From: Rhodosorus marinus CCMP1338
Lineage: Eukaryota > Plantae > Rhodophyta
Direction: 5' to 3'
DNA: 64,000 nt
Assembly: GCA_029953675.1 (NCBI GenBank)
Contig: JAMWBK010000007.1
Span: 62,001 to 126,000, forward strand
Within the stretch, counting starts at the first letter, position 1. Each line of letters starts with the position of its first letter. The notes below the pieces were generated by a model. That model saw only the letters and a program-made list of their open reading frames with translations, was not told the DNA's origin and did not search any database. Shown here piece by piece: positions 47 to 42,077 of the stretch. A program made the translations under genes and the position numbers.

Positions 47-3000
47 CTCTACTAGCATAGCCTGAAGCGCTACGCAAGGCGTGAAGATGAAATAATAACT
101 AGGGAGGGAAGCATGCAACCCCAGGCGCCGATGGCGCGCCTCGGCAAGCATGCTGCTCTAATATCGCCACAGAGAGACACTTAAGCGCCGCAAAAGTTCC
201 AAGTATTCAACACGATGCTCAGTGGAACATTTCCGCAACCACTCCAAACCCGACTTCTCCACGTGACCAAAGCTTTCCACAATGAAAGGCTGGAACCGGT
301 GGGAGCGACCCTCAGCGCGAGGCAGGCTGGCCATACTCTCGGCATACCGTCGTTCCTTCACGCGGCGAAGGGCCGAAGCAGCTGCTCCCCGGCGACGGGC
401 GGCAGCTGTGAGATGGGCGCTTGCCACAGGGCATGTAATCGCGAGGTCAACATATGCTGAGCGCCTGGCGGCAGCATCGGAGACGAGGAGATCTGCGATA
501 CGGCGGGGCGGTGCCCTATCTGAGACCGATCTGGGTAGTTCCGATTCCACCTCAACCGTATGCCCTACCCGAGTCAGACATTCGCTGAGAATGTACTTGA
601 AGCGAGTGTGACGCCTCGTACGAAGACCTCTCAACAGTCCGCATGAACCTAAGAAATGGTAACCACATGCATCGATCCGACTCTCACATCCCTGACAGAA
701 AGACGGCCGATTAGAGTGCCAGGGAGCTTGTGGCAAACCCAGGTAAATCCGTGCGGCAAAGCGAAACTTGAAGGCATCCAGACGGTGACCCAGTGATGAC
801 GGCAGGGTCGTTAACCACAAATGTGAAAGATGGCCTCCCGTGCCGCGGAGGCGAGCGGCGATAGGCGGTGTGAGTGGAGAGTTGAGCAAGATTGCGTGAG
901 CGGCACTGTGTTGGCCCCAGGTGAGGCTATGTTGAATCACATCAGTGCGCGAGCTCCACAATCGGCTCAGACCCGGGTAATCGGCAACCGGTGACCCGGG
1001 GCTATCTTTCCCCTCGTCGGCGAGTACTCTGTCGACGGGAGAGTCCTCGAGCGCCTAAGTTCGTCCCCATAACAGCTGATTCCAGGAGCGAAATCTGGAT
1101 CGGCTCTCGTCCGGCACGGCGTTGCACTTGCTGAACGCCTGTTGCAGGGCATCATAGATACTCAAAAGCGGCGGCGGAAGGGTCACGGGGTTTGGGCTAG
1201 TCAGTGCTCTAGCCAAAAGGCAAGCACTTCGCATTCGAAAACTCACCAAGGTGCGAAGCGCGGTAGCCCAGGCGGGGACCGCCGCTGCCGAGCATCGATT
1301 CCACGGTCGGCCACTCCAAATCCGCCTAATCGTAAAGGTAGGGCAATCTGGCCACGAATTAGGTCCCTGTCAGGAGCCGCTTCCATATCCAGGGGTTCAT
1401 CCAGGAGCGTTCCCCAGTGCTTCAGCGTCGCCTCGTCCGCCTTGGCTGCCATCCACGAGCCCCAGTGCGGTGGAAGGCTTCGCAGCCAGTAATTCAGTCG
1501 GGGGCCGGCACAAAAGCGGGAGAGCAGGCAGGCCGATTGGAGCATGCAATCCGGTAGGCGCTCAATGGCGTCGGTGAGCTGCTTATGGCGCGCTAAAACT
1601 CGTTCGCAAGAGTCTTGGACAAAGTTGTCACTCCCCAAACCGACGCCATGGTGCTCGAGCCCCGCATGTTCACCAAGGGCCCGGAGACTAGGTGGCAGGG
1701 AGCCCCTCGAAACTTCACGCGAGAAAACGGCATTTTTCGGGTTCCACGGTTAGACCTACTCCACGTGCGATTGCTTCGATCTGGGTCACTCCCCGAGCCA
1801 AGTGCTCAGGAGTGCCCAGCAACGTCACGTCGTCATGGTAGGCACAGATGCGAAGCTCCGGCACCTCAGCCGCCAGTCGCTGGAGCACGAGCTGCAAGGC
1901 ACAGGCGTGAAGTACCAGCTCACAAGGATTACCCTGTTGGACGCCAGTACGTGCTGCAAAAACAGAGCCCTGCGTTGTCAAGTAAGGGAGGCTCCCCCCT
2001 CCGTAAATACCGGATAGGAACGGCCACGCCTCCGGGAATACCCTGCGAATCACCTCCAAAGCATGCGTCCGCGAGACGCTGTTGAACGCGTTACGGAAGT
2101 CAACTACCAAAACGCCCCAATCAGGCCTACTGGCTCGCTCGAGTTCGATCGTATGGGTGATTAGTTGGCTTGGCTTGGCTTTACTAGCATAGCCTGAAGC
2201 GCTACGCAAGGCGTGAAGATGAACTAATAACTAGGGAGGGAAGCATGCAACCCCAGGCGCCGATGGCGCGCCTCGGAAAGCATGTCGCTGGAATATCGCC
2301 GAAGGGAGACACTTAAACGCCTCAAGAGCGCCAAATATTCAGTAGGATGCTCAGCAAAACATTTCCGCAACCACTCTAAACCCGACTTATCGACGTGACC
2401 AAAGCTTTCCACAATGAATGGCTGGAACCCGTGAGAGCGACCCTCAGCGCAAGGCAGACTGGCCATGCTCTCAGCATACCGTCGTTCCTATGGGACGCGA
2501 CCCCCGAAAAATCCCACCCCTACCTGCCAAGGCGCCATAAAGGCGGTGACTCGCTGGCGTAGGTGCTGGCATAGCCATCTCCCGGCGAGTTTCCGTAGAC
2601 TCTCAACCATGCCGATTGGCCGGAGACGCGGGTGTGCCGGCTCGTGGTCGGGTTTCGTTAACAAGCAAAGCTGTGCCCGTCGCAGATGGTCCAGAGGGGC
2701 AGACGCACCCCCTGCACCCTGGAACAGCGTATTCAGGATCTTCACCAGGGCGCTATGGCCAGGCTTGCTCAAGGCCTGCATAATTCCGTTCGTAGCCCAG
2801 AGGGTCCAGCGCAGCGTCCACGACGGGAGGTCCGGAGCAAATCCTCCAGATCGGACTCACGGAGCGTCAGGTCGATGCAGAACCTGGCCAACTCTGGACG
2901 GTCTAAAAATGCGTCGAATTCGGGGAGCAAGTCTACGTCGGACGAGGGGAACAACGCCGACACAGTCTGGTCGAGGCTCTCGTCGTACGGGTGTACAGGA

Positions 3001-5113
3001 ATCTGACCCTCCAAGACCGTGCCGTTCGGCTCAGGTCGCCAGCCGCCATCAAATTTCTGCACTCGAGTCGTCCTAGGCGAGTCTGTCCCAGCACGAGTCC
3101 TCCGGCCGGATGCCTCGGATGACGCCAAGTAGCTCTGCTGCAACACCTCAAATTCCCCCTTCAGGAACATGGCCAGTCGTTCTCGGACGCGCCATCTGCG
3201 CTCCGATGTGTGAGTAGGTGCCAGAATCAGGCGCGGGATGACCCCCAAAAATTCCCACATAGCGACGTCCCGTTAATTACGCGCCAGACTCTGGAAAATA
3301 AAATCCAGGATTGTCCTGGCCATGGAGAGCTCTCCTCGAGGGAGGACCAGAGGCGGAATCCTGCCCCGGAGGGTTAGGGAGGCTCCTCCAAAGAAATTCA
3401 TCGTCGGAGCCAACTCCGCGGGCGCGTGCGCCAGATGCCCCAGTCTCCGGCCTCCTTCAGGACATAAGCCTGCAGGTCCATTGCTGCGACCTCGCATCCG
3501 TGCCCGGGGAGCTAATCTGTGCTTCTCCCCCTTAGACCCGGGGGAGTCGGTCCTCGCGCGCTTGCCTCCTAACCTCACCAAACTGGTCAACCGGCCACTC
3601 CGCGAGGCTCGCGGGATGGCTCCCCGCGGATTCAACAAAGTAATAGGGGCGTTCTCGACCGACATGACCTCCGGCTCCCCTTCCTCGCCACTCGCACTGG
3701 ACGCGGTGCTTGGAGCAAAGCCCTCTAATACTCCCAAACGCCGTAGCTCTGCCTTTTGACTTGAGGTCAGCACAAGGTGCCTCTGCCGGTCAAAAAAAGG
3801 TAGAGGCAGCTGCGCGTAGATGGCGTGGACACGACGCAAAACGCTCCAAAAGTATCCGCTCCATGCGATGAATGCGAGGCCAATGCATGGCTGCAGCTTT
3901 CACACTGGTCTCCTGCTCAGATAGCCCTGCTGTTTCTTCGGGAGAGAGGAAAGTGCCGGAAAAACGGTCGAACCCGAATGCAATACGACCTGGGGTTGAG
4001 AACGCAACCAGCGGGCGCTCTCAGGCCACTGCTCGGTAGGCTTCTCCAGCAGGGCCTGCAAGTACGTGGCCGCGGTCGGCGTGAGCACAAAGAGGACATC
4101 GCGACCCTCATAATTTGCGATAATGAAGTCTTCGCGGCTACACCCCAAAGACTCTGCAAAAGTATCCGGAAAATCTCTCATGGACGGGACCTGGCCACAT
4201 TTAGTCTGGGGCCGGACGTTGCCCACCCGGGGGAATTGCAAAGTGGTCTCCCCAGGTCCGTCCTGCTGCTCGCGAGAGGGCAAAAATCTTAACATAGCCG
4301 CCGTTCGTGCGGCTGTGGTACCCTTCCGCAAAACTGAGACGTAAGACCGGGCCCCCTTGGGACCACCGCGTGCCCCCGCCTTGGCTTGGAGCTGTCGCCC
4401 ACCTGAGGGCTGGCCCAGGATGGGAAAGTCCGCTCCCGCTGAGGGAACATTCGAAGGATTAGGCAGCTCTGCACCCCTCTCCGAAGAGCACCAGCTGCGG
4501 AACCACCTTTGTCACCTCCAGATCCCGGAGCTCCCCTCACCTGTCCCGGGACAGGTTGTTGATTGACCTGGAGAAATTGACTGTCTTCTGCCAACTTGGC
4601 CACCCGGCTGGAATTCAAATTCTCACCCGAATTTGAATTTTCCCTCGCCAGGAGACCCAATTCCGGCCCCCTTAGCTTCTGGGTGAGCTGAGGAATGACA
4701 CCTCGATTGCCCGCGGCCGTAATCAGGCTTGTTACAGCAGAGAGCAGGGCACGCACTTCCGTACTAGGCACTCCACCTGCGTGGAGAAAGGGCCCGCGCG
4801 AAGAGACACTCTGTGTCCACCCTCAGTAGACACCTCCGCCCTCGGGATCCCCGGATCCTCAGGAGTGGAGCGCGGAGGAACCCCGGTCATCACGGAAGAG
4901 TATGTTCAACAGGAGTTTCACGAAGGAACCATACCAAAATATCCCGCACAATCCAGCGCCGCAGACCGAAAACTCTGGATCGAACACACCCAAAGGGGGA
5001 GAATCCCCGATAATCAACCACGAAACCCCCAAAAGCGGGAGAAAAGACAGCGAGAGGATGCGCCTGCAACGAGGAAATCCTCTCGGACCGCAACACGACT
5101 CCAATCGCAATCC
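47..5113 (-). mobile_element. Family A non-LTR retrotransposon copy A1 (ORF1 + RT-RLE ORF2), frameshifted, interrupted by a short A insert
   Basis: Minus-strand ORF pieces give RT motifs (LRPIGMVE, VVDFRNAFNSVSR, TGVQQG, AYHDD), the CRE-like LPLRLGGFG motif, a CQGC..H..C knuckle, and RRH / IADLLV / YVDLAITCP / FQPFIVESFG endonuclease motifs. ORF1 pieces lie at 3273-4880. The 3' terminus CTATGCTAGT is at about 47-60. Confidence 0.92.
2167..2488 (-). mobile_element. 5'-truncated family A 3' fragment nested in the RT region of A1
   Basis: ORF 2224..2466 is the A C-terminus. It ends in TAGTAAAGCCAAGCCAAGCC and splits the A1 RT between GVGFFGG and LITHTIELE. Confidence 0.9.
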
Positions 5114-5189
5114 GGAACTAAGAACTAGGGAGGGAAGAGTGCAAACCCAGGCGCCGATGGCGCGCCTCGGCAAGCATGCTGCTAGAATA
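5114..5189 (-). mobile_element. 3' end of an older family A copy, split by A2 (continues at 9967-9984)
   Basis: Reverse complement of A 3' end CTAGCAGCATGCTTGCCGAGG...CTTAGTTCC. The adjoining sequence AGAATATCGCCACAGGGC resumes at 9967. Confidence 0.85.
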
Positions 5190-8100
5190 GGCTTTGTTAA
5201 TAAAACCACAAAGCGGGATCAGGAGCAAAAAGCCCTAGCAAAAGCATTCGTAAGGGTTTCCGGTGCTAGTTTTCGATGGTTTTTGCGTGGCAAGTGGGTT
5301 CTTCGGTGGGAGGTGCTTCTCTCTGCTGCCTTTTCCCCCGTTTTTTCGGGTTTTGTGGTTGGTAGTCGGATCATTCACCTTCTGGTTGTTGGGTCGTGAC
5401 GCGGAGTTTTCTCCTGTGGAGTTGGGTGGTGTGTGTTTTCGGCGGGGGATTTGGTGATTAAAGTATCGTCACTAAATTCTCTCGTGATGGTAGGGGTTTC
5501 CCCGCGCCCTGCTCCCTCGGGAGCGGAGCTCCCTGTCAACGAGGTGTCCTTTGGGGTTGGGCACCGGGTGTGTCTAAGTTCGGGCCCCTTCTCTACGCAG
5601 GTGGAGCTGCAGGGCGCCACTGGTATGGAGGTACGAGCCCTCATGTCAGCCGTCACCACCCTAATCACCGCCGCGGGGGACAAGGGCGTCCTGCCGCAGC
5701 TGACCCAACGCCTTGGTTTGCTGGAATCCAGCCTCCTGGCGCCTGCTCTAAAATCTAACATGGTGGCCACGGTGGCTACGCGGCCCCCAGGCAGTCAAAA
5801 TCAAGGGATCAGTCACTCTGCGACTGTTCCCGAACAGGTGCGGGCTGCCGAGCCCGCTGTTGGTCGTCCCTCGACTGGCACCTCTTCGGGGAGGGGTGCA
5901 GCTATCTCTACTCCTTTGCACGTCCCTACAACGGGAGCGGACTTTCCTGTGTGCTGGGCCAGCCCTCAGGTGGAGGACAGCTCCAGGTCAAGGCGGTGAC
6001 ACGTGGTGGCCCTAAGGGGGGCCCGTCGTACGTCTCGGTTTGACGGAAGGGTATCACAGCCGCCCATACGGCGGCTATGCTAGAATATTTTGCCCTTTCG
6101 CGAGCAGCAGGGCGGACTTGACGTGACTACTTTGCAATTCCTTTGGGTACGCAACGTTTGGCCCCAGACTACACGGGCAAGGTCCCATCCAAGCGTAATT
6201 TCCGGAATACTTTTGCGGAGTCCTTGGGCTGTTGCCGAGACGACTTCCTTTTTGCGAACTACGAGGGCCGGGATGTTCTTTTCGTGGTCACTGCAACAAC
6301 GGCCACGTACCTGCAGGCACTAGTGGGCAAGCCTACAGGGCAATGGCCTGAGCGTGCCCGCTGGTTGCGGTCTCATCCCCAGGTCGTTCTGCACTTTGAC
6401 TTTGACCGTTTCTCGGGCGCTTTCCTGTCTCCCGAAGAAACAGGGGGACTCTCTCAGCACGAAACCAGCGTGAAAGCCGCAGCCATCCATTGGCTACGCC
6501 TTCACCGCATTGAGCGTATACTTTTGGAGCGTTTCGCGTCCGGGCCACGCCACCTGCGTGCAGCCGTCTCTACCCTTTTCGACTGGGAGAGGCGCCTTGT
6601 GCTGAGCTCGAGTCAAACGGCGGAGTTACAGAGGTTGAGGGTAATAGAGGGCTCTGCTACCAACACCATTTCCAGTGAGAGTGGTAAGGAAGGGGAACAG
6701 AATGAGGGCATGTCGGTGGAGAACGCCCCTTTTACTTTGTTGAAGCCCGAGGGAGCTATCCCGCGAGCCTCGCGGAGTGGGCGGCTGACCACTCTGGTGA
6801 GGTTAGGCGGAAAACGTGCGAGGACCGACTCCCCCGGGTCTAAGGGGGAGAAGCACGATTAGCTCCCCGGGGTACGGCTGTGAGGTCGCAGCCGATGGAT
6901 TTGCAGTCTTATGTCATGAAGGAGGGCGGAGACTGGGGCATTTGGCGTACGCGTTTACGAAGTTGGCTCCGGCGTTGGATCTCTTTGGAAGGAGGCTTGC
7001 TTCCCCTCCGTGGCAGAATTCCGCCTGCCGTCCTACCTCGCGGCGAGCTCTTAGTGGCTGGGAACATCCTGGACTTCATCTTCACGAGCCTGGCGGTAAC
7101 CTTCGGGACACCGTCATTTGGGAATTTCTGGGGGTCATGCCGCGCCTGATTCTGGCCCCAATTCACACACCGGAGCGCAGATGGCGTGTCCGAGATCGGC
7201 TTGCCATGTTCCTGAAAGGGGAACTCGAGGTGTTGCAGGAAAGCTACTTGGCGTCGTTGGAACCAACCGTTCGTCGGACCCGGGCTGGAAGCGTCTCGCC
7301 CCTGACGGCTCGAGTACAGAAATTGGTAGCGGTGGGCGACTTGAGTCGAGCGGCGCGAGTTCTGGAGGGCCAGGCGCCTGTCCTCCCCTGCGAATAAAGT
7401 CACGCCCAGACGGTGTCATCTTTGTTCCCCTCGTCCGACGTGGACTTGCTACCCGAATCCGAGGCATTCTTGGACCGTCCGGAGTTTGCCCGGTTTCAAA
7501 TCGACCTGAGTCTCAACGAGTCTGATCTGGAGGATTTGCTTCGTACTTCGCGTCGTGGACGCTGTCCTGGACCCTCAGGGCTTCGAACCGAATTATTGCA
7601 GGCCTTGGGCAAGCCTGGCCGGAGCGCGCTGCTCAAGCTCCTGAACACACTGTTCCAGGGCACATCGGCTGCGTCTGCCAATGGGAACATCTCCGAAGGG
7701 CACAACTTTGCTTGCTCACGAAGCCTGGCCATCAGCCCGTCCACCCGCGTCTCCGACCGATCGGTATGGTCGAGAGCCTACGGAAGCTAGCTGGAAGGTG
7801 GCTATGCCAGCGCTTTCGCCAGCGGGTCACGGCTTTCATGGCGCCCTTGCAAGTTGGGGTGGGATTTTCCTGGGGTTGCGAATTGATCACCCACGGGATC
7901 GAGGTGGAGCGTGCCTGTAGGCCGGACTGGGGAGTTTTGGTGGTTGATTTTCGAAACTTATTCAACAGCGTCTCGCGGACGCATGCGTTGGAGGTGATCC
8001 GATGGGTTTTTCCGGAGGCGTTGCCCTTCCTCTCTGGTCTTTACGGAAGGGGGAGCCTCCCCTACTGCACCAGGGAGGGCAATGTTTTCCAAGCACATAC

Positions 8101-9966
8101 TAGAGTCCAACAAGGCGATCCTTGTGGGCCTCTACTTCATGCCTGTGCCTTGCAGCTCGTTCTCCTGCGGTTTTCCTGGTCTCGCGACTGAGGTGCCGGC
8201 TCTTCGTATCTACGCCTATCACGACGACGTGACCTTGCTGGGCGCCCCTGAAACCCTGGCTCAGGGGTTGACCCAGATCGAAGCGATTGCACGTGGAGTA
8301 GGTCTGACGGTGGAACCCAAAAAATGTCGTTTTCTCGCTCCAAGTGAAGTTTCGATGGCCTCTCTGCCATCTAATCTACGAACCATTGGCGAACGTGAGG
8401 GGTTGGAGCACCACGGCGTCGGTTTCTGGAGCAACAACTTCATCCAAGCCTCTTGCGAACGAATTTTGACTCGGCACAAGCAGCTCACTGACGCCATTGA
8501 GCGCCTTCCAGACAGCATGCTGCAATCGGCCTGCTTGTTTTCCCGCTTTTATGCCGGTCCCCGACTCAATTACTGGTTGCGTAGCCTACCACCCGACTGG
8601 GGTTCGTGGATCGCCGCCAAGGCCGACGAGATGACGCTGAACCACTGGGAAACGCTCTTGGATGAACCCCACGACCTTGAAGCGGCTCCCGACAGGGAAT
8701 TAATTCGTGCCCAGCTCGCTCTGCCGTTGCGCTTAGGGGGATTTGGTGTGGCAGATCGGGGACTCGTCTGCTCGCCTGCAGCGGTCGCCTCCTGGGCAAC
8801 CGCGCTCCGTACCTTGGTGACTTTCCGGATACAAAGTGCCTGCATTTTGGCCCGAGCACTGACTAGCGAGGACCCAGTGACCCTTTCGCCCCAGCTTTTG
8901 ACAATCTATGATGGTCTACAACAGGCGTTCCGGAAGTGCTAACGCCGTGCCGGACGAGAATCTATCCCGTTTTCGCTCCTGGCGGGAACTGCTATGGGGA
9001 CGAACTGAGGTGATTGAGGATTCACCCATTGACAGAGTTCTTGCCGATGAGGGAGAAGCTAGCCCCGGGTCACCTGTTGCAGATTACCCAGGTCTGAACC
9101 GATTGTGGAGCTCCCGCACTGATGTGATTCAACATAGCCTCACCTGGGGCCAACACAGTGCCGCTCACGCAATCCTGCTCAACTCTCCCCTCACACCGCC
9201 TACCACCGCCGATCGGCTCCGCGGCATGGGAGGCCATCTCTCGCACCTGTGGTTAACCACTCTACCTTCGTCGCCGAGTCACCGTCTCGATGCCTTCCAG
9301 TTCCGCTCCGCCGCACGGATCTGCTTAGGTTTGCCACAAGCCCCGTGGCACTCTAATCGGCCATCTTTCTGTCAGGGATGTGAGAGCCGGATTGACGCTT
9401 GTGGCTACCACTTCTTGGGTTCATGCGGACTGTTGCGAGGTCTCCGCACGTGGCGCCACACTCGTCTCAAGTACATCCTAAGCGAATGTTTAACTCGGGT
9501 AGGAGATACGGTTGAGGTGGAATCGGAACTACCCAGATCGGTCTCGGACACGGCGCCGGTCCGCTGTATCGCAGATCTTCTTGTATCAGACCCTGCCGCC
9601 CCCCGCCGAGGGGCACCCGCTTCGGCTCCTCGACGAGTAAAGGAACGACGATATACTGAGAGCATGGCTAGTCTGCCCTAGGCCGAGGCCCTACGCCGAG
9701 GGTCGCTCCCACCGGTTCCAGTCTTTCATTGTGGAAAGCTTTGGTCATGTGGATAAGCCGGGTTTAGAGTGGTTGCGGAAAAGTTTGGCTGAGCATCCTA
9801 CTGAGTACTTGGCGCTTTTACGGCGTTTGAGTGCTGCCCTGTGGCGATATTCTAGCAGCATGCTTGCCGAGGCGCGCCATCGGCGCCTGGGTTTGCACGC
9901 TTCCCTCCCTAGTTCTTAGTTCCTTTTCACGCCTTGCGTAGCACTTCAGGCTATGCTAGTAAAGCC
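5190..9966 (+). mobile_element. Family A copy A2, full length, multiply frameshifted
   Basis: ORF1 starts MVGVSP at 5487 and ends GEKHD* at 6862. ORF2 (MDLQSY...) has RT and RLE motifs in broken frames to 9919. Flanked by AGAATA at 5184-5189 and 9967-9972. Confidence 0.92.
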
Positions 9967-10139
9967 AGAATATCGCCACAGGGCGGCACACAATGCTGCT
10001 TTACTGGCTTTACTAGCTGCTTTACTAGCATAGGCCCTGCTGGCGGTGGTCTTCAATGATTGTATTTATTCGGAGAAAGTGAGGAAACGAAGAAGGACAC
10101 ATTTCCTATCATGAGTGAATGCGTGATTCGGGGCTGAGA

Positions 10140-11035
10140 AAAACGGGGGGTAAAAAGAACGATTGAAGGCGAAGCTCACGCGCTTCCAACATCAAACCGG
10201 CGTTCATATGCAATAACAGGAACACACCTATGACTCCCCGTTCCCTCTCATAGGACACCCACCCGAGTTAGTTTTCCAATAAATCAAACAGGCAACTCAA
10301 ACGGGTAAACGACGAGGAGATTCGCTCGGGGTGCTCACGGAACCCTTCGCGAAGCCAACGGGAACCAACTGGAGCCAACGGAATCCATAAATCCAAAACC
10401 CTCAATTACCAAGGACACCAGGCGATAGGCGGGGTGATTGATTTGGAACCTGCACGCTGTAGTGCTAAAGGAAGCTAACAGAAGTAGCGAGCGTAACTAG
10501 CCCCCTCAACGGGATAGTAAACCAGATTCTCAGGGAAAATACTCCTTGGAGACGAATCGCGCGCGATCACATTGAGCGCTTGAGCTTATAATTGATTCCT
10601 GCCCTGGCCGAAGTTAAAATCTCACCATTGCGCTCAATATTTGATGTTAAGTCCGCAGCATATTCCGTTGCCGCCTTCCCAAACCGTCCAAATACCTCCA
10701 CAACAGAAGGAACAGACATAAAGTCATTGTATAATCCATTGAATCTCGAGAATGTACCCGGTTCCCAACTTCCCCTGGGACCTCAATAACGAGCAGGACG
10801 ACGCGATGCGCTAGGGCTGATTAAAGTACCCTAGCGTCGGTAAGCAGTTTCATAGTAAACGTTCCGCTTAAGGCGGCGCATGATGGTGGCAGCAGCACCG
10901 CGGTGTGGCGACGGGGACAGGGAGTAGCCACGATTCGCCAGTGGACAGGGCTGGCAAGTCGTACGATATCAACATAAGTATTCCGCCGTCCATCAACATC
11001 CGCAACCACCAAATCAGCAACGCTCGGGCCCTTAA
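10140..11035 (-). mobile_element. Degenerate family B 3' region interrupted by a fragment of another RLE element
   Basis: B-like segments (VADVDGRRNTYVD; GGAATCCATAAATCCAAAACCCTC; reverse complement of TTTGATGTTGGAAGCGCG). The internal 10590-10920 segment encodes PSVVEVFGRFGKAATEY on the minus strand. Confidence 0.65.
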
Positions 11036-17127: not shown

Positions 17128-20100
17128 GTAACCGTAAGCTTTACTGGGCAGCTGCCTACTGCAGCGCAACACTACGTCTAATCCTATCTAGGGAGAAACT
17201 TACTGGAACCCCGCTAGCGGGGTCTCATGCTACGTTCAAAAGAAAAAACAGGCACCAGCGGATTCTCCAACTGGTCCACGCGCAAAGCGCCTAGTGCTAT
17301 CTCTGCGTTACCTCGCCATAGTTGCCGGTTTATCTGCGATCTCAGGTCTCTCAGCTCCTCACTCCTCTGCAGTAAGTGTTTGCAGCTGTCGCGGAGGAAC
17401 TCTTGTGCCATTTGCCCCGTACGCCCAAACGTCTCTATCGCTATCGGGATGAACTTGTCATCCGGTTTCTCCATCACCATCGCTTCCTTGTAGTGAGCGA
17501 TTTTCCACTTCTCCGCAGCTCTCGCCGCGTATCCGCTATCATCTTGGCTCCGCCGCAAATATTTTCCCTGTAATGGTGACACCACGGTCACATCCAGCGC
17601 ATACCTTTGTTCGGTCCTCGGATGCCTGGCAACGATATCAGGTCGCAGTCCGTAGTTCTCGAAGTACCCCTCAGGTTCTTGCTCTACGTCCATGAAGTTC
17701 CATCGCCTCAGCCACCGTGCCAGCTCTCTGCAGATTTCGTCGTGCCTACGTTGCCACAGTCCAGTTGATGTTGGGCAGTGATGAAACCGTTGTACCCCAG
17801 TCCTTCCGTGTTTACTCCGGCAACTAGTGCACTTCTCGGTGGTCCGCAATCCCGTAATTGGCAGCCCCAGCAGTTGTCGAACGTTTACCTGCATCTCAAC
17901 CGCACTCAATTTTTTCGGTGTCAGCGTTAGTATTTCACGCAGCCAGACTCCCGACCCGGATCCCGCGGCGGACCGTATTCGAGCTCGGTTTTCAGGGGAG
18001 ATTCGTGGGGTTGATGACCAACCTTTGGAATGCACAATGGTGTGCCTCTCGAGAGAGGGTTTGTTGTATTGAACCATTATTCCAAGCTGCAGTCTCGCCC
18101 GGTGCGCTTCGAAGAGATGTTTCTCGCGGTTGTTGCAGGGTAGTCAGTGCCAAGATCCGCGGCGGGGTTTCTGGTCCGAGCCTCCGTTGTATTGCTCGCG
18201 ACGATGCACAGATCTGATCCGCCAGCTGTGCAGTCGACCAGCGTTGCTCCGTCGGCTCGTATGTGTCTGGTGAGCGTTCTGCCGAAACCTCCCGCTCTAG
18301 TTCAGTCAGGTATGGCCATTCATCTTCATTGTTCCGGAAGGTGTTTCTCCATGACAAGTAAAACGCGATGGGTTGGACGCGCTTTCGAGTAGCGAAACCC
18401 AACCCCCCCCCCCAGCGGCAGGGCAGAGCGATTTGGTCCGAGATCAGCTCTGCGTACTCGTCGTCCTCTACAGCTGCCGTAGCGAGGCCTCCGAATAGAA
18501 TTTCCAGATGATATCTGGTCATCACATCGGCCTCGCGTGCCAGAGTTCTTCCAAACTCGTATGCGAGGCATCGTAGAACATAATCTAGCCGCGCTTCCGC
18601 ACAGAACCTGAAGAGGGCAATTTGCGTCGTAAGCTCCGGTTGTGGGAGCTTGGCAATTTCCTCAAAGAGTTTCTCATGCTTATTTTGCAGCCCCCGGCAC
18701 TCCTGTTCGATATATTCTCGGCTGCCTATCGGTATCGAGTGGATGGTGACTCCGTCTCTGGTCACTTGGACTCCAGGAATCTCATGATTGACCACTCGCG
18801 TGGTAGTCAGTGTTCGCCCGTACACAGTGCACTTGCCGAGTTGCAGGCGTGCTCAAAGAGAGGGGAGCACAGTTTTTGCCCATGCCAGGGGTGCCTTCAA
18901 GGCTTGTAGCGGCCCGACAATCGTGATATCGTCGTGGATAGCAACAATCGTTTCGTTGGGGAACTTGGCTCGCAACGCTCTTAGAAAGGGCGCAACGCTC
19001 TTGGAAAGGGCGCCAGGGATAGTCCGTGCAGCACCGGCCCCAGTGGATCTCCCTGTTGGACTCCTGTAGCTCCTTGGAGGTCAGACGAGAGGTGTCGGTT
19101 TCGCTCTGTCCAGGGGCAGATCGCCAGCCACAGAGCGTCGGTGAGTCCGCGTTGTCGCTTCCATAGCCAAGTCTATACACTGGTGCAAGCTCCGGGAAGT
19201 GCTCGTCCACCAGTTTCTTGGCAAGGCGTCGGTCGATGCGATTAAAGGCATTCTTCAGGTCTAGCCGAAGGACCACCGAATCGGGTTCACATGACAAATG
19301 GGCCTGGATCGCGTGAAGTGAGCGTTCGCACCCGCCACTTACTCCAATACCCAGTTGTAAGGGCACCAGGAGCTCACGCACCCTGTCCATAACCGCGTGA
19401 AGAGTCCATGGCGTTGCTACCTTGCGCAAAACTTCTGGTACTCCGATAGGGCGAACTCCGGGATGTTCCGGCGGCACTGAACCCTTGTAAGGCTTCGCGA
19501 ACGGCAGGAGTCGACTGCTGCGAAGGGCGCGGGTCAGAGCCGTGGAAAATTTCTCTGGAGCGGTCGCCAGTTGTCGCAATACACGAATCAACGCCACTGC
19601 CTCTGTTGAGTTTCACCTTGGAGGTGTTCCGCTCCGAGACCGCTAGGGCCTGAGCTCTTGCCTTGAGGAAGACGTGCCACGATCGACATGAGGCCCTCGT
19701 CGGCCGCTTTTCTTGAATCCCACCGCCGCTTAAGTGTTTCGGTATTCAGAGCGAGCAAAGATTCCAGGGCTTGTGCAATCTCGTCTGGTAAGTCACCTCC
19801 CGCCGGGTCGGGAAAGAGCGCTTGAGGTTGTCTCCACGTAGCCGCGGTAAAAGGTGCCATATCGGTGGCCTGTAGGCTCCGAGCTGCATCTGAAAGGCGG
19901 CCAAGGTGTGCTAGTTTCAACGCTCGCTTGTGGCGCCCGAGATGTTGGCATCGAACCGCTTTAGCTCCTTGTGGTGCGGTAGTATGCGACAGCATAGACG
20001 CCTTGTCCTCTACAGCGCTCCAGACCGTAGAGAATTCTCCTTCAAGCACGTGCGATACCTGAATGCCAACATCAAGTGCAGAGTGTCCAAGGACAAGGCC

Positions 20101-22977: not shown

Positions 22978-25439
22978 GATTCGTGTATTGCGACAACTGG
23001 CGACCGCTCCGGAGAAATTTTCCCCGGCTCTGACCACGCCCTTCGCAGCAGTCGACTCCTGCCGTTCGCGAAGCCCAACAAGGGTTCAGTGCCGCCGGAA
23101 CATCCCGGAGTTCGCCCTATCGGAGTACCAGAAGTTTTGCGCAAGGTAGCAACGCCATGGACTCTTCACGCGGTTATGGACAGGGTGCGTGAGCTCCTGG
23201 TGCCCTTACAACTGGGTATTGGAGTAAGTGGCGGGTGCGAACGCTCACTTCACGCGATCCAGGCCCATTTGTCATGTGAACCCGATTCGGTGGTCCTTCG
23301 GCTAGACCTGAAGAATGCCTTTAATCGCATCGACCGACGCCTTGCCAAGAAACTGGTGGACGAGCACTTCCCGGAGCTTGCACCAGTGTATAGACTTGGC
23401 TATGGAAGCGACAACGCGGACTCACCGACGCTCTGTGGCTGGCGATCTGCCCCTGGACAGAGCGAAACCGACACCTCTCGTCTGACCTCCAAGGAGCTAC
23501 AGGAGTCCAACAGGGAGATCCACTGGGGCCGGTGCTGCACGGACTATCCCTGGCGCCCTTTCCAAGAGCGTTGCGCCCTTTCTAAGAGCGTTGCGAGCCA
23601 AGTTCCCCAACGAAACGATTGTTGCTATCCACGACGATATCACGATTGTCGGGCCGCTACAAGCCTTGAAGGCACCCCTGGCATGGGCAAAAACTGTGCT
23701 CCCCTCTCTTTGAGCACGCCTGCAACTCGGCAAGTGCACTGTGTACGGGCGAACACTGACTACCACGCGAGTGGTCAATCATGAGATTCCTGGAGTCCAA
23801 GTGACCAGAGACGGAGTCACCATCCACTCGATACCGATAGGCAGCCGAGAATATATCGAACAGGAGTGCCGGGGGCTGCAAAATAAGCATGAGAAACTCT
23901 TTGAGGAAATTGCCAAGCTCCCACAACCGGAGCTTACGACGCAAATTGCCCTCTTCAGGTTCTGTGCGGAAGCGCGGCTAGATTATGTTCTACGATGCCT
24001 CGCATACGAGTTTGGAAGAACTCTGGCACGCGAGGCCGATGTGATGACCAGATATCATCTGGAAATTCTATTCGGAGGCCTCGCTACGGCAGCTGTAGAG
24101 GACGACGAGTACGCAGAGCTGATCTCGGACCAAATCGCTCTGCCCTGCCGCTGGGGGGGGGGGTTGGGTTTCGCTACTCGAAAGCGCGTCCAACCCATCG
24201 CGTTTTACTTGTCATGGAGAAACACCTTCCGGAACAATGAAGATGAATGGCCATACCTGACTGAACTAGAGCGGGAGGTTTCGGCAGAACGCTCACCAGA
24301 CACATACGAGCCGACGGAGCAACGCTGGTCGACTGCACAGCTGGCGGATCAGATCTGTGCATCGTCGCGAGCAATACAACGGAGGCTCGGACCAGAAACC
24401 CCGCCGCGGATCTTGGCACTGACTACCCTGCAACAACCGCGAGAAACATCTCTTCGAAGCGCACCGGGCGAGACTGCAGCTTGGAATAATGGTTCAATAC
24501 AACAAACCCTCTCTCGAGAGGCACACCATTGTGCATTCCAAAGGTTGGTCATCAACCCCACGAATCTCCCCTGAAAACCGAGCTCGAATACGGTCCGCCG
24601 CGGGATCCGGGTCGGGAGTCTGGCTGCGTGAAATACTAACGCTGACACCGAAAAAATTGAGTGCGGTTGAGATGCAGGTAAACGTTCGACAACTGCTGGG
24701 GCTGCCAATTACGGGATTGCGGACCACCGAGAAGTGCACTAGTTGCCGGAGTAAACACGGAAGGACTGGGGTACAACGGTTTCATCACTGCCCAACATCA
24801 ACTGGACTGTGGCAACGTAGGCACGACGAAATCTGCAGAGAGCTGGCACGGTGGCTGAGGCGATGGAACTTCATGGACGTAGAGCAAGAACCTGAGGGGT
24901 ACTTCGAGAACTACGGACTGCGACCTGATATCGTTGCCAGGCATCCGAGGACCGAACAAAGGTATGCGCTGGATGTGACCGTGGTGTCACCATTACAGGG
25001 AAAATATTTGCGGCGGAGCCAAGATGATAGCGGATACGCGGCGAGAGCTGCGGAGAAGTGGAAAATCGCTCACTACAAGGAAGCGATGGTGATGGAGAAA
25101 CCGGATGACAAGTTCATCCCGATAGCGATAGAGACGTTTGGGCGTACGGGGCAAATGGCACAAGAGTTCCTCCGCGACAGCTGCAAACACTTACTGCAGA
25201 GGAGTGAGGAGCTGAGAGACCTGAGATCGCAGATAAACCGGCAACTATGGCGAGGTAACGCAGAGATAGCACTAGGCGCTTTGCGCGTTGGACCAGTTGG
25301 AGAATCCGCTGGTGCCTGTTTTTTCTTTTGAACGTAGCATGAGACCCCGCTAGCGGGGTTCCAGTAAGTTTCTCCCTAGATAGGATTAGACGTAGTGTTG
25401 CGCTGCAGTAGGCAGCTGCCCAGTAAAGCTTACGGTTAC
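22978..25439 (+). mobile_element. Family C copy C2, 5'-truncated, near-identical inverted twin of the C1 3' half
   Basis: ORF translations 23741..24574 and 17992..18825 are identical. It shares the same 3' terminus as C1. Confidence 0.92.
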
Positions 25440-27001: not shown

Positions 27002-27045
27002 GACGAACAGCGTTTCTGTACAACAACCTCCCAACCAAACCAGAT

Positions 27046-27176
27046 ACAGCTTGCTTCCTCTCCCGCCCTGCTCGCCCCCACCCGCTCGCGCTCTTAGGAT
27101 ATGGGCGCAAGGTACTATGTAACCCCACAGCAGCGCCGAACGCGCCCTGCTTTGATGCTTTGGAGGCGCGCGACCT
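27046..27176. repeat. About 130-bp block duplicated at about 29298-29440
   Basis: TACAGCTTGCTTCCTCTCCCGCCCTGCTCGCCCCCACCCGCTCGCGCTCTTAGGATATGGGCGCA...GGAGGCGCGCGACC is present in both places. Confidence 0.9.
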
Positions 27177-27369: not shown

Positions 27370-28310
27370 CTTTCCGCCGTTTTCATGGTCGAGAATTTTG
27401 ACTACCACTGCTGAGATGAGCTCCTCAGTGTTTTGGTTCTGTCCGCCGTTTTCACGGTCCAGAATTTCGACTACCACCGGAAATGAGCTCAGATTTTTTG
27501 GCTGACAAACATTTAACAGTAGAAAAAAAAGGAAATATTTTAGGGTATTCGAAGGAGATCCTCGTCATTCATTGGTCGATAATATCGACTACCATTGGAG
27601 AACGAACGAATGGTTTAATCGGAGGCTGAAAAAAAAACCCCGAGGGGAAAAAAATTGGAGAAGAGCTCAGTTTGTTTTTCACGGATTCATCCGTGAAACA
27701 GAACTGCAACTACCACTGCCCGTTTCCCACATGAATGCCGCTTTGATGTAATCGTTGTTTACCCGCTTAAGTTTCCAGCTGTGGCGCATGAATGCCGCTT
27801 TGATGTTGGAGGCGCGAGTACTTCGCCGCGCTTAGTCTTTTTTTCCCCTCGGGGTTTTTTTTTTTCAGCCTCCGATTAAACCATTCGTTCGATGTTGGAG
27901 GCGCGAGTACTTCGCCGCGCTTAGTCTTTTTTTCCCCTGTTTTTTTTTTTTTTTCAGCCTCCGATTAAACCGTCGAAATTCTCCACCAGCGTATGACGAG
28001 GGTGTTCTTCGAGAATCTTATAAACGGATCATCAATGGCTAAAGAAAAACCGATGTGGGAAACGAACGAATGGTTTAACGAATGGTTTATTCGTTCGTTT
28101 CCCACATCGGTTTTTCTTTAGCCATTGATGATCCGTTTATAAGATTCTCGAAGAACACCCTCGTCATACGCTGGTGGAGAATTTCGACTACCACTGGAGA
28201 AGAGCATAGTTTTTCTTCACGGATTCATCATAGGGGTCGGCTGCCACTGCCCGTTCCCACAACTGTTTTAAGTTAGCCATTGATGATGACGTCATCAGTG
28301 AATCAAAAGC
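27370..28310. repeat. Imperfect tandem repeat containing GACTACCAC(T)GGAGAAGAGC, carrying stacked family B 3' ends and a 100-bp perfect inverted repeat
   Basis: GACTACCA motif at about 27400, 27468, 27587 and 28186, and again at 29550. CCACTGCCCGTT(T)CCCACA...TTAGCCATTGATGAT occurs twice. Inverted arms are 27972-28071 and 28089-28188. Confidence 0.8.
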
Positions 28311-28745: not shown

Positions 28746-29873
28746 GTGGGATTGGGCACCGGAGTGGAGGGGGGGGGGGGTTGGGTGAAGGGCGGCCTCC
28801 ATATCGAGTTTTAGACCAGATCTATTTGATGGATTTATGGGTCTATAGCTCGATTAGGGTACTGTTCAGGTCTAAACGAATCTTTCCCACGCTCGAAACC
28901 CTTCCCCCGTCTCCCCCCCCTTCCCTCTACCTCACTTAGTACTCCCAGATGTCATAGTAGCTTGTACTAGTCCACCCATTGGTCCCCAGGCGTGCCATGT
29001 AAAAAAATACCATATTTCTAAATATTGCACAAACAGAATCTGATTGGCTTAAGTTGAGGACAGCGTGTCGACAAATTTGACCCTTTCGATATTAGTATCG
29101 CATACTGCTGTGTACTATATCCGAATGTATCGAGATCAAATCAGCTTATTCGGATCAGACAGGTTGACACTCTGTCCAAGACTATTTGGACGTTTGTGAA
29201 GAAAGTCAGCTGATCTGGCGAGGAAGGAGAGTTATCGTTTTTGTTCCTTTCGATGTTAGTTGCAGTTCCGCGAACGGAGGAGCTTGATGCGAGGCCAGAC
29301 GGGGGGGGTACAGCTTGCTTCCTCTCCCGCCCTGCTCGCCCCCACCCGCTCGCGCTCTTAGGATATGGGCGCAGCGTACTATGTAACCCCACAGCAGCGC
29401 CGAACGCGCGCTGCTTTGATGCTTTGGAGGCGCGCGACCGCTGGAAATGAGCTCAGTTTTTTTGGGCTCACAAACAATAATCAATAAAAAAAAGGAAATA
29501 TTTTAAGGTATTCGAAGGAGATCCTCGTCATTCATTGGTCGATAGCATCGACTACCACTCTAGAACGAACGAATGGTTTAATCGGAGGCTGAAAGAAAAA
29601 ACCCGGAGGGGAAAACCCCCACACGAGAGTTTTCGGTTTCGTGAGGGTGTATGGTGCTGGCTTTTGGTGGTTTTGAGTCGCAATTGTGTTCTTCGGTGGG
29701 AGGCGCTTCTTTCTGCAGCCTTTCCCCCGCATCTTCTAGTGGTGTGGTGCGTGCTGGGGGTTGCTAGCGCCCCTTGGAGGTCGTGGTGGTTTTCTTTGGT
29801 TGCAAACGTTGGGAACAAGTTCTCTTTTTGGGGGTTTCGTGGGGGAATCGGTTTTTCACACCTTCCAATCGTT

Positions 29874-31172
29874 ATGGTTGGGGTTTCCCCACCCATTCCG
29901 GAGGACGGAGCCGTTCTCTCAGCGCGTGTGGAGCTCAGCGTGGGCGGGTTTAGTACCGCGGCCACCCTCACGGACTGCGCTGACGAGTTGGCCCATGGGA
30001 TCTGCTCGAAACTGACGAGTCTTCTTGTGACTGCTTCCCAGGAACACCGCCTGCCCCTGCTGATCGCCTATTTGGAGCGCTTCTCCGCCTCCGCGCCTGC
30101 CCCATACCCCCCGGTGCCCGTCCCCGCGGATCCGCACGGTACAGCGGGGCCTGCCTCCACCCGACCCGAGCGCTCCGCTCCGGTCATTCCTGATTCCGAC
30201 TGGCCTACCCCTATTCAAGGACAGACGCCTCCTGGGCCCGCGTCGGGCCCGAATCCTGCTCCCTCCAGTGCCCCACGTGCGACCTATTCGCAGGTCCTGC
30301 GCAGGGGCTCTTCTGAACAACGCACGACGGCAATGGTGCGTATGATGCCACAACACATCCCTATTGACTCTTCTCGCCAACTATCTCCGTTCCACTTTGT
30401 TTGGATGACGAACGTGCGTCCCCAGACCCCCTCTCGTGGTCGGGGCCGCGCGCCCGTCCACTACCGCGATTTTCGCGACACCATGGCTTCCTCCCTTGGG
30501 GTCGCCCCATCTGAATTCCTATATGTGGACTTCACGGGCCCTCATGCCTGTTTTCTTGTTACTGACTCGGCTTACCAGTTCCTTCAATCCCTTGTAACCA
30601 CCCCCGCGCCCCAGCGCTCTGCTCTGGCCAACATGATACTGACTCGTCCTCATGTCTCTTTGTTTGTCGAGTTCGATCGTTTTGACGCCGGCTGGGTTCC
30701 TCCGTCGGCCTTGCAAAACCTGGATGCCTCGCAGGCTTCGGTTGTCGCGCTACACACTCATGCGGCGCGGCTCTCGCGCATACAGGCGAGCCTCTTCGCG
30801 CGTTTTCCTCCTCGCGGGGTCCTCCGCACCGCGCTAGAGGCCTTCCTCTCCACTGAGGCCACCCTGCTGGAAGCCCACCCTGCGTTTGACCTTCTGCCGC
30901 CGACTCTTGAGCACCCTTCCTCCCCTCGCCCTGTCTCCGAGGCTCGTGACACCGACATGGCAGGAGCACCATCGGCCTCTCCGAATCCGCTGGCTCTGGA
31001 CACCCTCAGTCAAGACTCCGCTGCTGAAAACCCTGTGTCTACTTTCTTCAGGTCTTTTAGTTCCTTCGTGCGCCCCCCACGTAAGCGTCGTGCGGCTCCT
31101 GAGCCTCCCTCCGAGGCACCTCCTCCGGATATTCGATCTGCCTTCCCGACTGAGGGGAGGCCCGATGTCTGA
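29874..31172 (+). CDS. Family B ORF1, putative RNA-binding (RRM-like) protein
   Basis: MVGVSP start matches family A ORF1 starts. Has a Pro-rich linker, the conserved FVWMTNVRP..RDFRDTMASSLG..EFLYVDFTG.HACFLV domain, and a basic RKRR motif near the C-terminus. Confidence 0.8.
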   Translation: MVGVSPPIPEDGAVLSARVELSVGGFSTAATLTDCADELAHGICSKLTSLLVTASQEHRLPLLIAYLERFSASAPAPYPPVPVPADPHGTAGPASTRPERSAPVIPDSDWPTPIQGQTPPGPASGPNPAPSSAPRATYSQVLRRGSSEQRTTAMVRMMPQHIPIDSSRQLSPFHFVWMTNVRPQTPSRGRGRAPVHYRDFRDTMASSLGVAPSEFLYVDFTGPHACFLVTDSAYQFLQSLVTTPAPQRSALANMILTRPHVSLFVEFDRFDAGWVPPSALQNLDASQASVVALHTHAARLSRIQASLFARFPPRGVLRTALEAFLSTEATLLEAHPAFDLLPPTLEHPSSPRPVSEARDTDMAGAPSASPNPLALDTLSQDSAAENPVSTFFRSFSSFVRPPRKRRAAPEPPSEAPPPDIRSAFPTEGRPDV

Positions 31173-34100: not shown

Positions 34101-34305
34101 TCGTGCTTCGGCACTAGCACATCGCTTGGTACCCCTGATCATTGAGTGCTTTGGGTTCATGGACTCTGTTGGTTCTCGCTGGCTTCGGGAGTTGTTCCGC
34201 GAACGCCCTGACCGTCTTCAATCGTTGTTTACCCGCTTAAGTTTCCTGCTGTGGCGCATGAATGCCGCTTTGATGTTGGAGGCGCGAGTACTTCGCCGCG
34301 CTTAG
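31165..34305 (+). CDS. Family B ORF2: reverse transcriptase + CCHC knuckle + restriction-like endonuclease (one short frameshifted patch)
   Basis: ATG at 31165 (MSESSS). Motifs include IRPIGLVE, VDFTNAFNRVSR, TGVQQGDPLSP, AYHDD, LPLRLGGLG, CPLC..H..C, RTRRH, VADLVI, YVDLAVPNP and LIIECFG. The in-frame TAG at 32569-32571 lies in a compensated frameshift patch. Confidence 0.9.
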
Positions 34306-34360
34306 TCTTTTTTTCCCCTCGGGGTTTTTTTTTTTCAGCCTCCGATTAAACCATTCGTTC

Positions 34361-34488
34361 GAGGGGAAAAAAAGACTAAGTGCGGCGAAGAACTCGGGCC
34401 TCCAACATCAAAGCGGCATTCATGCGCCACAGCAGGAAACTTAAGCGGGTAAACAACGATTGAAGACGGTCAGGGCGTTCGCGGAACA
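34361..34488 (-). mobile_element. Remainder of an older family B copy whose tail is at 29563-29615
   Basis: Reverse complement of the B 3' region with substitutions relative to the full-length copy (GACTAAGTGCGGCGAAGAACTCGGGCC versus GACTAAGCGCGGCGAAGTACTCGCGCC). Confidence 0.85.
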
Positions 34489-37400: not shown

Positions 37401-37692
37401 CAAATGACTGTGTCCCGAATGTTGCGAGCCAGGCTCGTGAAGATGAAATCGAGAATGGTTCCAGCTACTAGAAGGTCTCCACGAGGAAGGACGACTGGGG
37501 GAATGCCCCCACGGAGGGGAAGCGAGCCTCCTTCCAAAGAAATCCACCGCCGGAGCCAACTCCGAAAACGCGTACGCCAAATGCCCCAGTCTCCGCCCTC
37601 CTTCAGGACATAAGACTGTAGATCCATAGGCTGCGACCTCGCAGCCGTGCCTGGAGCGCTAGTCGTGCTTCTCCCCCTTAGACCCGGGTCAC
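34489..37692 (-). mobile_element. Family A copy A3, 5'-truncated in ORF1; ORF2 intact except for one frameshift
   Basis: ORF2 runs from MDLQSY (37627) through the complete RT (TGVQQGDPCGP, AYHDD). A 2-nt loss at about 35300 shifts it to the 34564..35379 frame with the knuckle and RLE. Confidence 0.93.
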
Positions 37693-38235
37693 CGTCTGGA
37701 TGCCTTCCAGTTTCGCTCCGCCGCACGGATTTACCTGGGTTTCCCACAAGCTCCTAGGCACTCTAATCGGCCGTCTTTCTGTCAGGGATGTGAGAGTCGG
37801 ATCGATTCTTGTGGTTACCACTTCTTAGGTTCACGCGGACTGTTAAGAGGTCTTTGTACGAGGCGTCACACTCGCTTCAAGTAGATTCTCAGCGAATGTT
37901 TGACTCGGGTAGGGCATACCGTTGAGGTGGAATCGGAACTACAAAGATCGGTCTCGGATAGGGCACCGCCCCGCTGTACCGCAGATCTCCTCGTCTCCGA
38001 TGCTGCCGCCAGACGCTCAGCATATGTTGACCTCGCGATTACATGCCCTGTGGCAAGCGCCCATCTCAAGGCTGATGCCCGCCGCCGGGAGCAGCTGCTT
38101 CGGCTCTTCGCCGCGTGAAGGAACGACGGTATGCTGAGAGTATGGCCACGCTGGGTTTGCACGCTTCCCTATCTAGTTCTTAGTTCCCTTCACGGTTTGC
38201 GTAGCGTTTTAGGCTATGCTAATAAAGCCTAAAGC
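37690..38235 (+). mobile_element. Family A 3' fragment (A5) joined in inverted orientation to the 5' break of A3
   Basis: Encodes HRLDAFQFRSAAR, GHTVEVESEL and YVDLAITCP, and ends CTATGCTAATAAAGCCTAAAGC. Confidence 0.88.
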
Positions 38236-41671: not shown

Positions 41672-42077
41672 ATATCAGGAGAAGAGACCCCATTGTCACG
41701 ACATATTCATCAGGTTTTCCTCATCGAACGCCTTTCACGTGTACTTACTTTGTACCCATTTTTTTGCAGACGAACTTGTTCAGTTAGAGAAGGCCTACCC
41801 CAGCGCGCGACTTCAGAACTGTTACCAGCTCTTCTCGTTCCTACGCATCAATTTGAGCGAGCGCCCTCCCTCTAACTGTCGTTCGCTGTAGCTAGGATTT
41901 GCCGTCCTGTCGTGAACGCCTTTCTACCCGATAAATAATCCAAAACAAAATATCAGTTTAGCTCATTTAAGTAAAATAGTGAACTATATTAGGTATCTCG
42001 ACTCAAAAATATACTGTATCCTTAATTTATATTAAGTAAAACTATCTATTTAGAGACTATCCTTATGTAATAGGCAC

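Follow-up and report, generated by a model that had tools for sequence, protein, structure and literature searches.

Nested and clustered insertions of two R2-like retrotransposon families in a 64-kb window of the red alga Rhodosorus marinus

A 64-kb window of the genome of Rhodosorus marinus CCMP1338, a unicellular, stylonematophycean red alga, was analyzed (assembly GCA_029953675.1, contig JAMWBK010000007.1, record positions 62001-126000, in the interior of a 2.2-Mb contig). The window harbors two families of retrotransposons that lack long terminal repeats (non-LTR), here named A and B. In each family, one full-length copy (A2 and B2, respectively) interrupts the 3’ end of an inverted copy of its own family (A1 and B1, respectively). 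New copies cluster in or beside earlier 3’ junctions in both orientations, and this clustering is nominally significant without any strand rule. A2 and B2 are considered ordinary target-primed insertions at re-used hot spots, made by an endonuclease of loose specificity, with a probability of roughly 0.5. All coordinates refer to the window, and all element counts, targets and statistics to this one window of a single assembly.

At the family A locus, the following features were distinguished:

5190-9966, plus strand: A2, full-length A-family element of 4777 bp, defective
5184-5189: target-site duplication of A2, copy 1, AGAATA
9967-9972: target-site duplication of A2, copy 2, AGAATA
5114-5183, minus strand: left piece of A1, reverse complement of the 3’ coding end of A (equivalent to A2 positions 4665-4734)
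9973-9996, minus strand: right piece of A1 (equivalent to A2 positions ~4636-4658)
47-5113, minus strand: A0, older near full-length A copy, ~82% identical to A2, whose 5’ untranslated region (UTR) adjoins A1
9997-10039, minus strand: minimal 21-nt A 3’ terminus CAGGGCCTATGCTAGTAAAGC with the reiterated tail units AGCTAGTAAAGCC and AGTAAAGC, directly upstream of A1 on the minus strand
10111-10430, minus strand: D, a B-like element represented by its 3’ end and separated from the A mini-copy by 72 bp

If 5170-5189 and 9973-9984 are joined, the result is GCAAGCATGCTGCTAGAATATCGCCACAGGGC, the reverse complement of which is an exact 32-nt match to 9836-9867, i.e., to the 3’ end of A2 itself. The interrupted A1 of ~100 nt is composed of the reverse complement of 9973-9996, the target-site duplication and the reverse complement of 5114-5183, and matches A2 at ~4636-4734. 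Over the fragment body, 87 of 88 positions are identical (one mismatch), and the loose part is restricted to the first 12 nt. A preliminary description of this DNA had reported an antisense insertion of A2 into an A 3’ end with a 6-bp duplication; this was confirmed, and its coordinates were right overall, except that A1 reaches ~9996 and not 9984. The cut lies within codons for ...WRYS...; its distance is ~118 nt to the element end, ~30 nt to the earlier A tail and ~75 nt to the original flank junction.

The left piece of A1 stops 4 nt past the A stop codon, and on the minus strand A1 is followed without a gap by the A0 5’ UTR, with a TTCC(GG) microhomology at the joint. Since its own last 43 nt are missing, A1 may be a template-jump addition to the 5’ junction of A0 instead of an independent copy. 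The order on the minus strand is the 3’ end of D (to 10111), 72 bp, the A terminus with its tails (10039-9997), A1 and the 5’ UTR of A0. The terminus and tail units either stem from template jumps or show that the locus had been used before.

A2 ends in ...GCTATGCTAGTAAAGCC. Its remnants of an ORF1-like open reading frame (ORF) and of ORF2, the latter with reverse transcriptase (RT) and restriction-like endonuclease (RLE), are spread over at least four different frames. Compared to A0 (400-470), a deletion of ~60 bp in A2 (9590-9640) removes the conserved YVDLA nuclease motif, which is present in A0. A2 either moved with the enzyme of another copy, or the segment was lost once A2 had been inserted. 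The first ~43 nt of A2 (5190-5232) have no counterpart in B2 or A0 and consist of the A 3’-tail-like motifs TTAATAAAACC, ACAAAGC and AAAAAGCC; judged from these motifs, the leader looks like the product of an RT that, on finishing the first strand, jumped over to other RNAs at their 3’ ends. In several copies, the 3’ tails consist of the reiterated last 8-13 nt of the element, e.g., (AAGCC)3 at ~2170. The terminal 16-18-mers of the A and B 3’ ends are GCTATGCTAGTAAAGC and TCAGCCTCCGATTAAACC.

At the family B locus, the corresponding features are:

29616-34362, plus strand: B2, full-length B element of 4747 bp
29608-29615: target-site duplication of B2, 8 bp, copy 1, GGGGAAAA
34363-34370: target-site duplication of B2, 8 bp, copy 2, GGGGAAAA
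29563-29607, minus strand: 3’-terminal piece of B1, ending in the local repeat U at ...CGACTACCACTCTAGAA|
34371-34488, minus strand: 5’ piece of B1, 5’-truncated at about B position 4625
34489-37688, minus strand: A-beta, 5’-truncated A copy, whose reiterated tail adjoins the 5’ end of B1, head-to-head with A-alpha
37684-38235, plus strand: A-alpha, 5’-truncated A fragment

The joined flanks (29563-29607 and 34371-34488) are the reverse complement of a 175-nt 5’-truncated B copy with a complete 3’ end, i.e., B1. That family B repeats the arrangement of family A, as the preliminary description had also stated for 29563-34488, was confirmed; the span covers B1 and B2. The cut lies downstream of the stop codon, ~47 nt from the element end and ~50 nt from the junction between B1 and U. 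B1 and B2 differ by ~6 private differences in 170 positions, while the other B copies are 99% identical to B2. Because of this divergence, B1 is older than B2 and the two arose in separate events; given the 99% identity of the other copies, family B was active recently. ORF1 of B2 runs to 31172 and ORF2 (RT and CCHC/RLE) covers 31165-34305, with the ATG at 31165 overlapping the stop codon of ORF1. ORF2 contains a single in-frame TAG (32569-32571), which leaves B2 one stop codon short of two intact ORFs.

The exact target-site duplications, together with homology that runs uninterrupted for 32-175 nt through the joined flanks, place both nested matches far beyond chance. An assembly artefact was rejected owing to the geometry of the duplications and the position of the site inside the 2.2-Mb contig. 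Twin priming, the LINE-1-type inversion, was rejected as well, as the duplications do not enclose the inverted sequence, which continues across them without a break.

The identity of the elements was examined by profile, sequence and structure searches. The Pfam family RVT_1 was matched in B2 (4.5e-9) and in an A copy (7.7e-16). For an intact A-family ORF, the best sequence matches among solved structures were R2 proteins (1.3e-11), with LINE-1 ORF2p behind. The last 249 amino acids (AA) of B2 ORF2 were modeled with AlphaFold (predicted local distance difference test, pLDDT, 74.7; predicted template modeling score, pTM, 0.75) and the model was searched with Foldseek. All top seven matches were R2 proteins (E 1.2e-6 to 2.8e-4, template modeling score 0.48-0.58 over ~230 columns) and these were the only significant ones; restriction enzymes followed weakly. 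With phmmer, the B2 C-terminus ...HLLASCPAVKGARTRRH... was aligned to the CCHC/RRH motif of R2 (E 0.0018), and in the C-terminal alignment of seven sequences C51, H82, E107, D124, D139 and K169 are invariant. Upstream of the RT, no apurinic/apyrimidinic endonuclease was found in ORF2, in which RVT_1 is the sole Pfam match; a GIY-YIG endonuclease was not matched in Pfam either. No N-terminal zinc-finger/Myb domain was recognizable, as neither ORF1 nor the ~340 AA upstream of the RT gave a Pfam match, although a divergent domain is possible, and no CCHH pattern was visible in the translation. Since the RT and the modeled C-terminal fold both match R2 and an apurinic-type endonuclease is absent, A and B are RLE-type, R2-like two-ORF non-LTR retrotransposons, with the RT followed by a C-terminal zinc knuckle and restriction-like endonuclease. 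The RLE type given in the preliminary description is upheld by the fold search.

Within ORF2, A and B are 35-48% identical, and they share a stretch of 5’ UTR. The nearest proteins outside Rhodosorus are at most 37% identical, and the searched protein index contained no annotated A or B proteins from GCA_029953675.1; apparently, these two-ORF R2-like families of R. marinus are undescribed so far. Public data contain fragments 70-86% identical to A ORF2; of those looked up, one is an MMETSP transcript (P0040) and the others are JGI/IMG or Logan contigs. Because P0040 is a transcript, A-like elements appear to be transcribed in a related strain. Scanning metagenomes with the B 3’-terminal 17-mer gave 22 chance matches with no further homology.

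Ten insertions in the window could be reconstructed. Besides A2 and B2, these are:

27750-27892, plus strand: 143-bp B copy in sense orientation inside the 3’ end of a B fragment (27730-27749 and 27893-27971) at ...TTTGATGT^TGGAGG, duplication 3-5 bp
43144-43274, minus strand: B-like copy, sense, within the 3’ target duplication GAATTTAT of the copy at 43283-44299
43283-44299, minus strand: older B-like copy in unique DNA, duplication GAATTTAT at 43275-43282 and 44300-44307
42078-43081, plus strand: B copy in unique DNA, 13-bp duplication ATGTAATAGGCAC
41178-41673, plus strand: B copy in unique DNA, duplication ATCAGGAGA
53867-53904, plus strand: 38-bp B-like micro-copy in unique DNA, duplication CTGTAAAG
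27603-27654, minus strand: 52-bp B copy in repeat U, duplication TTGGAGAA at 27595-27602 and 27655-27662
2170-2495: 5’-truncated A copy, sense, in the RT region of A0, no clear duplication

The ten insertions occupy ten unrelated target sequences, and the accompanying duplications measure 0-13 bp. Unique DNA received at least four B or B-like insertions, each with a clean duplication, and the unrelated repeat U ~5 insertions. A hidden specific target gene was rejected, since neither Rfam families nor tRNA genes were found anywhere in the window. Re-use of single sites was observed directly. Between 43136 and 44307, three copies of GAATTTAT separate two B-like elements, which is a double insertion at one site, and the copy at 27603-27654 occupies the same position in U as the 3’ junction of B1 with a different 5’ truncation. 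Furthermore, 41 bp lie between the end of the 3’ duplication of the copy at 42078-43081 and the 3’ junction of the copy at 43144-43274, the two copies being arranged tail-to-tail. Head-to-head and tail-to-tail stacks, which the preliminary description had proposed, are present in the window, and head-to-tail stacks occur as well.

To describe the clustering, 19 3’ junctions in 44.3 kb were considered, among which six neighbor gaps are shorter than 140 bp; random placement reaches this in 0.015% of trials (P ~1.5e-4). An event was counted as 3’-proximal if it is located inside the last 150 bp, or at most 70 bp downstream, of an earlier 3’ end. Five of the ten events are 3’-proximal (binomial P 1.2e-4 over the whole window, 2e-3 when only repeat DNA is considered), three of them in antisense and two in sense orientation.

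In the explanation favored here, the endonuclease would nick both strands of an already present short, inverted, 5’-truncated copy of the same family, with a stagger of 6 bp for A2 and of 8 bp for B2. The 3’-OH of the sense strand of the old copy would prime synthesis of the complementary DNA (cDNA), which would produce both the antisense orientation and the duplication. A few loci would be re-used, such that new copies, whichever way they point, arrive inside or at earlier 3’ junctions or no more than a few tens of bp away. Site re-use would account for the GAATTTAT triple, the two matches at one U position and the ~5 B copies in 2 kb of U, and likewise for the location of A2 and B2 30-75 nt away from junctions used before. 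Site preference is known to give rise, by double insertion, to non-LTR dimers whose copies differ in 5’ truncation, and inverted nested insertions have been seen (McGurk and Barbash 2018, PMC5932611). We infer that the clustering stems from such a preference for sites or regions and not from recognition of element sequence. Repeated use of such sites or regions is in our view the most economical account, as no strand rule is needed and none is seen.

Several points weigh against this explanation. The statistical thresholds were chosen post hoc and all statistics come from the one 64-kb window. No shared cleavage motif was found at the ten nick sites, which were aligned by eye, so that the ‘site preference’ is unexplained at the sequence level. 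The two youngest full-length copies are both antisense, in their own family and within the last 150 bp, for which the joint chance is ~1e-4 if insertion is uniform; however, this figure is no test of the antisense hypothesis, since that very pattern suggested the hypothesis. Finally, A2, B2 and the copy at 27750-27892 are located inside element sequence in a zone of ~60 nt around a conserved ...GAGGCGCG... block, and element-directed targeting predicts likewise.

Accordingly worded, such targeting would be a homing to resident 3’ ends of the own family on either strand, in which the ribonucleoprotein is drawn to existing copies and nicks nearby DNA. For instance, element RNA or cDNA could pair with the copy, a nascent 3’ UTR transcript could serve as a tether, or the protein could have an affinity for the DNA of the 3’ end. 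The three insertions in the ~60-nt zone of own-family 3’ ends, the location of other insertions 0-41 bp from earlier 3’ junctions and the clustering statistics agree with homing; the ORF2 lacks a recognizable N-terminal DNA-binding domain, which makes target choice by another route conceivable, and relatives in Pyropia and on a GC-rich metagenome contig are arranged head-to-tail. However, the insertions in unique DNA and in U do not fit, the majority of 3’ ends with identical sequence are empty, the single-stranded 3’ regions of A and B fold no better than shuffled sequences (z = 0.03 and 0.8), and site re-use explains the clustering equally well. Homing is, hence, regarded as a tentative alternative. 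Rather doubtful, and slightly more so than homing, is an origin by chance, whereby in a gene-dense genome only insertions into repeats survive and 3’ ends are the commonest repeat sequence since most copies are 5’-truncated. Repeats make up ~35 of the first 44 kb. The joint probability that both elements hit their own family, at any place and in any orientation, is ~0.01, a value that is not extreme when the pattern was noticed afterwards. Yet the null model restricted to repeats still gives P ~2e-3 for five of ten, and the strict antisense pattern in the 3’ zone ~1e-4.

It could also be that one integration produced both the full-length copy and the inverted fragment, the latter by dual priming, template switching or snap-back. 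For family A, this would fit the identity of 87/88 between A1 and the 3’ end of A2, compared to 80-87% for other A copies, and the absence of the last 43 nt, expected to be present after a normal insertion. The enzyme also seems prone to template jumping, given the tail-like 5’ leader of A2 and the reiterated tails; a snap-back-like perfect palindrome with 100-nt arms is centered on a B 3’ micro-copy (27972-28188), and Penelope-like elements provide a precedent (PMC8557442). On the other hand, the insertion divides the inverted fragment in two and has a clean duplication, which is the pattern expected if the target already existed, and 87/88 over such a short stretch cannot separate 1% from 3-5% divergence. 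For B, a single event is contradicted, as B1 is clearly older and has its own flank and a complete 3’ end. A single complex event is therefore improbable. The poorest prospects of all are assigned to the model of the preliminary description, according to which the endonuclease specifically recognizes the antisense strand of its own 3’ region. Its basis is two post hoc, independent cases in two related families, both being the only young full-length copies in the window. Within the same window, strand-specific self-recognition is contradicted: the positions of A2 and B2 are not homologous, leaving one antisense case per family; the copy at 27750-27892 was inserted in sense orientation in the same zone, 13 nt from the position homologous to the site of A2; the 3’-proximal events are divided 3:2 between the orientations; and many insertions are located elsewhere. 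Moreover, the 3’ ends of four other A copies are empty, as are those of at least four B copies in which the identical target sequence TTTTTTTCCCCTCGGGG is uninterrupted. Ordinary target-primed insertion at re-used sites is, thus, retained as the preferred explanation.

Most of the regions 1-11 kb and 14.7-38.2 kb consists of repeats, and scattered copies extend up to 54 kb; no element copies were found in 8.5 kb beyond the window. The following host genes were noted:

~12.2-14.1 kb: dehydroascorbate-reductase-like gene
38497-39888, minus strand: Hint-domain gene
45464-47086: astacin/EGF/C2 gene
60997-62553, minus strand: actin-related ORF, matching at 92% identity a transcript that shares a cluster with a Rhodosorus marinus MMETSP entry

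Further host genes are located to the right of the astacin gene within the window. The Hint-domain ORF contains arrays of 24-, 12- and 21-bp tandem repeats (39187-39811), which encode a proline-rich, cornifin-like stretch. A B-like micro-copy of ~65 bp (48769-48832, minus strand) is present in unique DNA between host genes, and no duplication was identified for it.

A third related family, C, has the 3’ end ...CCCAGTAAAGCTTACGGTTAC. Its long copy C1 (minus strand) and its 5’-truncated copy C2 (plus strand) form an inverted repeat of 2.46 kb (17128-19589 and 22978-25439), which is 99.7% identical, head-to-head and 3.4 kb apart. Between both copies, an older C-like fragment is found, and the 3’ end of C1 adjoins a 3’-truncated A copy (14.7-17.1 kb). 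In the local repeat U, which is degenerate (motif TCGACTACCACTGGAGAAGAGC) and covers 27370-28290 and 29437-29565, the ~5 B insertions fall within 2 kb. In this region, 27045-27175 and 27473-27651 are duplicated at 29309-29439 and 29437-29615. A candidate old inverted junction (27130-27175 and 29390-29439) was dropped, as it has no significant similarity to any 3’ end. The arms of the palindrome at 27972-28188 are 100% complementary and separated by a 17-nt spacer. Its center is a B 3’-terminal micro-copy (TTAAACCATTCGTTCG with a 12-bp reiteration) and each arm consists of a B tail and U-repeat flank; the structure looks like snap-back synthesis at an abortive integration.

Distant relatives with 33% identity were found in Pyropia vietnamensis (GCA_042855435.1; L024 and L025 1-24397), where they form head-to-tail arrays of an 8053-bp unit. 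The units are 98-99.6% identical and the 3’ end of one is joined directly to the 5’ end of the next; one unit is 3’-truncated inside ORF2. On the GC-rich metagenome contig (L027), two copies of a relative stand in tandem, and a single copy was found in L026. Inverted self-nesting was absent from the three relative loci (two of Pyropia and one on the GC-rich contig). Since the relatives show head-to-tail arrays only, stacking may be a trait of the group, whereas antisense nesting is not. A break 153 bp from the 3’ end of a Pyropia unit turned out to be an unrelated 864-bp element with the terminal inverted repeats TGTAAGGGT...ACCCTTACA and the duplication GGGTA. Two inverted copies of this element apparently mediated an inversion in L024.

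The site specificity for which RLE elements are known is guided by protein. Homing to resident 3’ ends, if true, would be a target-selection principle not described for these elements; the confinement of retrotransposons to a few nests in a gene-dense algal genome, and the making of inverted repeats by this genome, would be explained as well. Elements without a recognizable DNA-binding domain would then be drawn to resident 3’ ends on either strand, a self-directed ‘safe haven’ in a compact genome with stacks and palindromes as by-product, which we consider conceivable but unlikely. As the evidence stands, two-ORF R2-like families are documented in a stylonematophycean red alga, together with a clean reconstructable set of insertions showing loose target specificity and site re-use.

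In comparison to known systems, A and B share with R2 and the other RLE elements (R2, R4, CRE/SLACS, NeSL, HERO) the order of an RT and a C-terminal CCHC zinc knuckle with a PD-(D/E)xK-type nuclease. Common features are also the 5’ truncation, the variable duplications and additions at the 5’ junction suggestive of template jumping. In contrast to these elements, A and B have two overlapping ORFs and no recognizable N-terminal zinc-finger/Myb region, and their 3’ tails are the reiterated last 8-13 nt and not poly(A). Whereas the site-specific RLE clades insert into ribosomal DNA, a spliced-leader gene, a small nuclear RNA gene or microsatellites, A and B use ten different targets.

Zepp of Chlorella, Cnl1 of Cryptococcus and MoTeR of Magnaporthe build self-nesting stacks of long interspersed elements (LINEs), which are telomere-associated and essentially head-to-tail. 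The arrays of Cnl1 are described in bioRxiv 10.1101/2021.08.11.455996. As in these systems, 5’-truncated copies pile into arrays in R. marinus; however, the nest is located between ordinary genes (the dehydroascorbate-reductase-like, Hint-domain and astacin genes), 62-126 kb from the contig end, and contains both orientations. For Penelope-like elements, insertion units have been described in which an inverted 5’-truncated copy lies beside the 5’ end of a full-length copy, with inverted repeats around the unit (PMC8557442). The combination of a full-length copy and an adjoining inverted 5’-truncated copy is common to both, but the nuclease here is of the RLE and not of the GIY-YIG type, and the inverted copy appears to be a pre-existing target split by the duplication; for B, it is demonstrably the older one. 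The closest likeness in arrangement to the copies at 43136-44307 is with the dimers formed by double insertion (PMC5932611), where one site is re-used and the duplication is left between differently 5’-truncated copies, with inverted and nested arrangements as by-products. The present data come from a single assembly and not from a population, and differ from those dimers in that three events took place inside an earlier 3’ end and not at the duplicated target.

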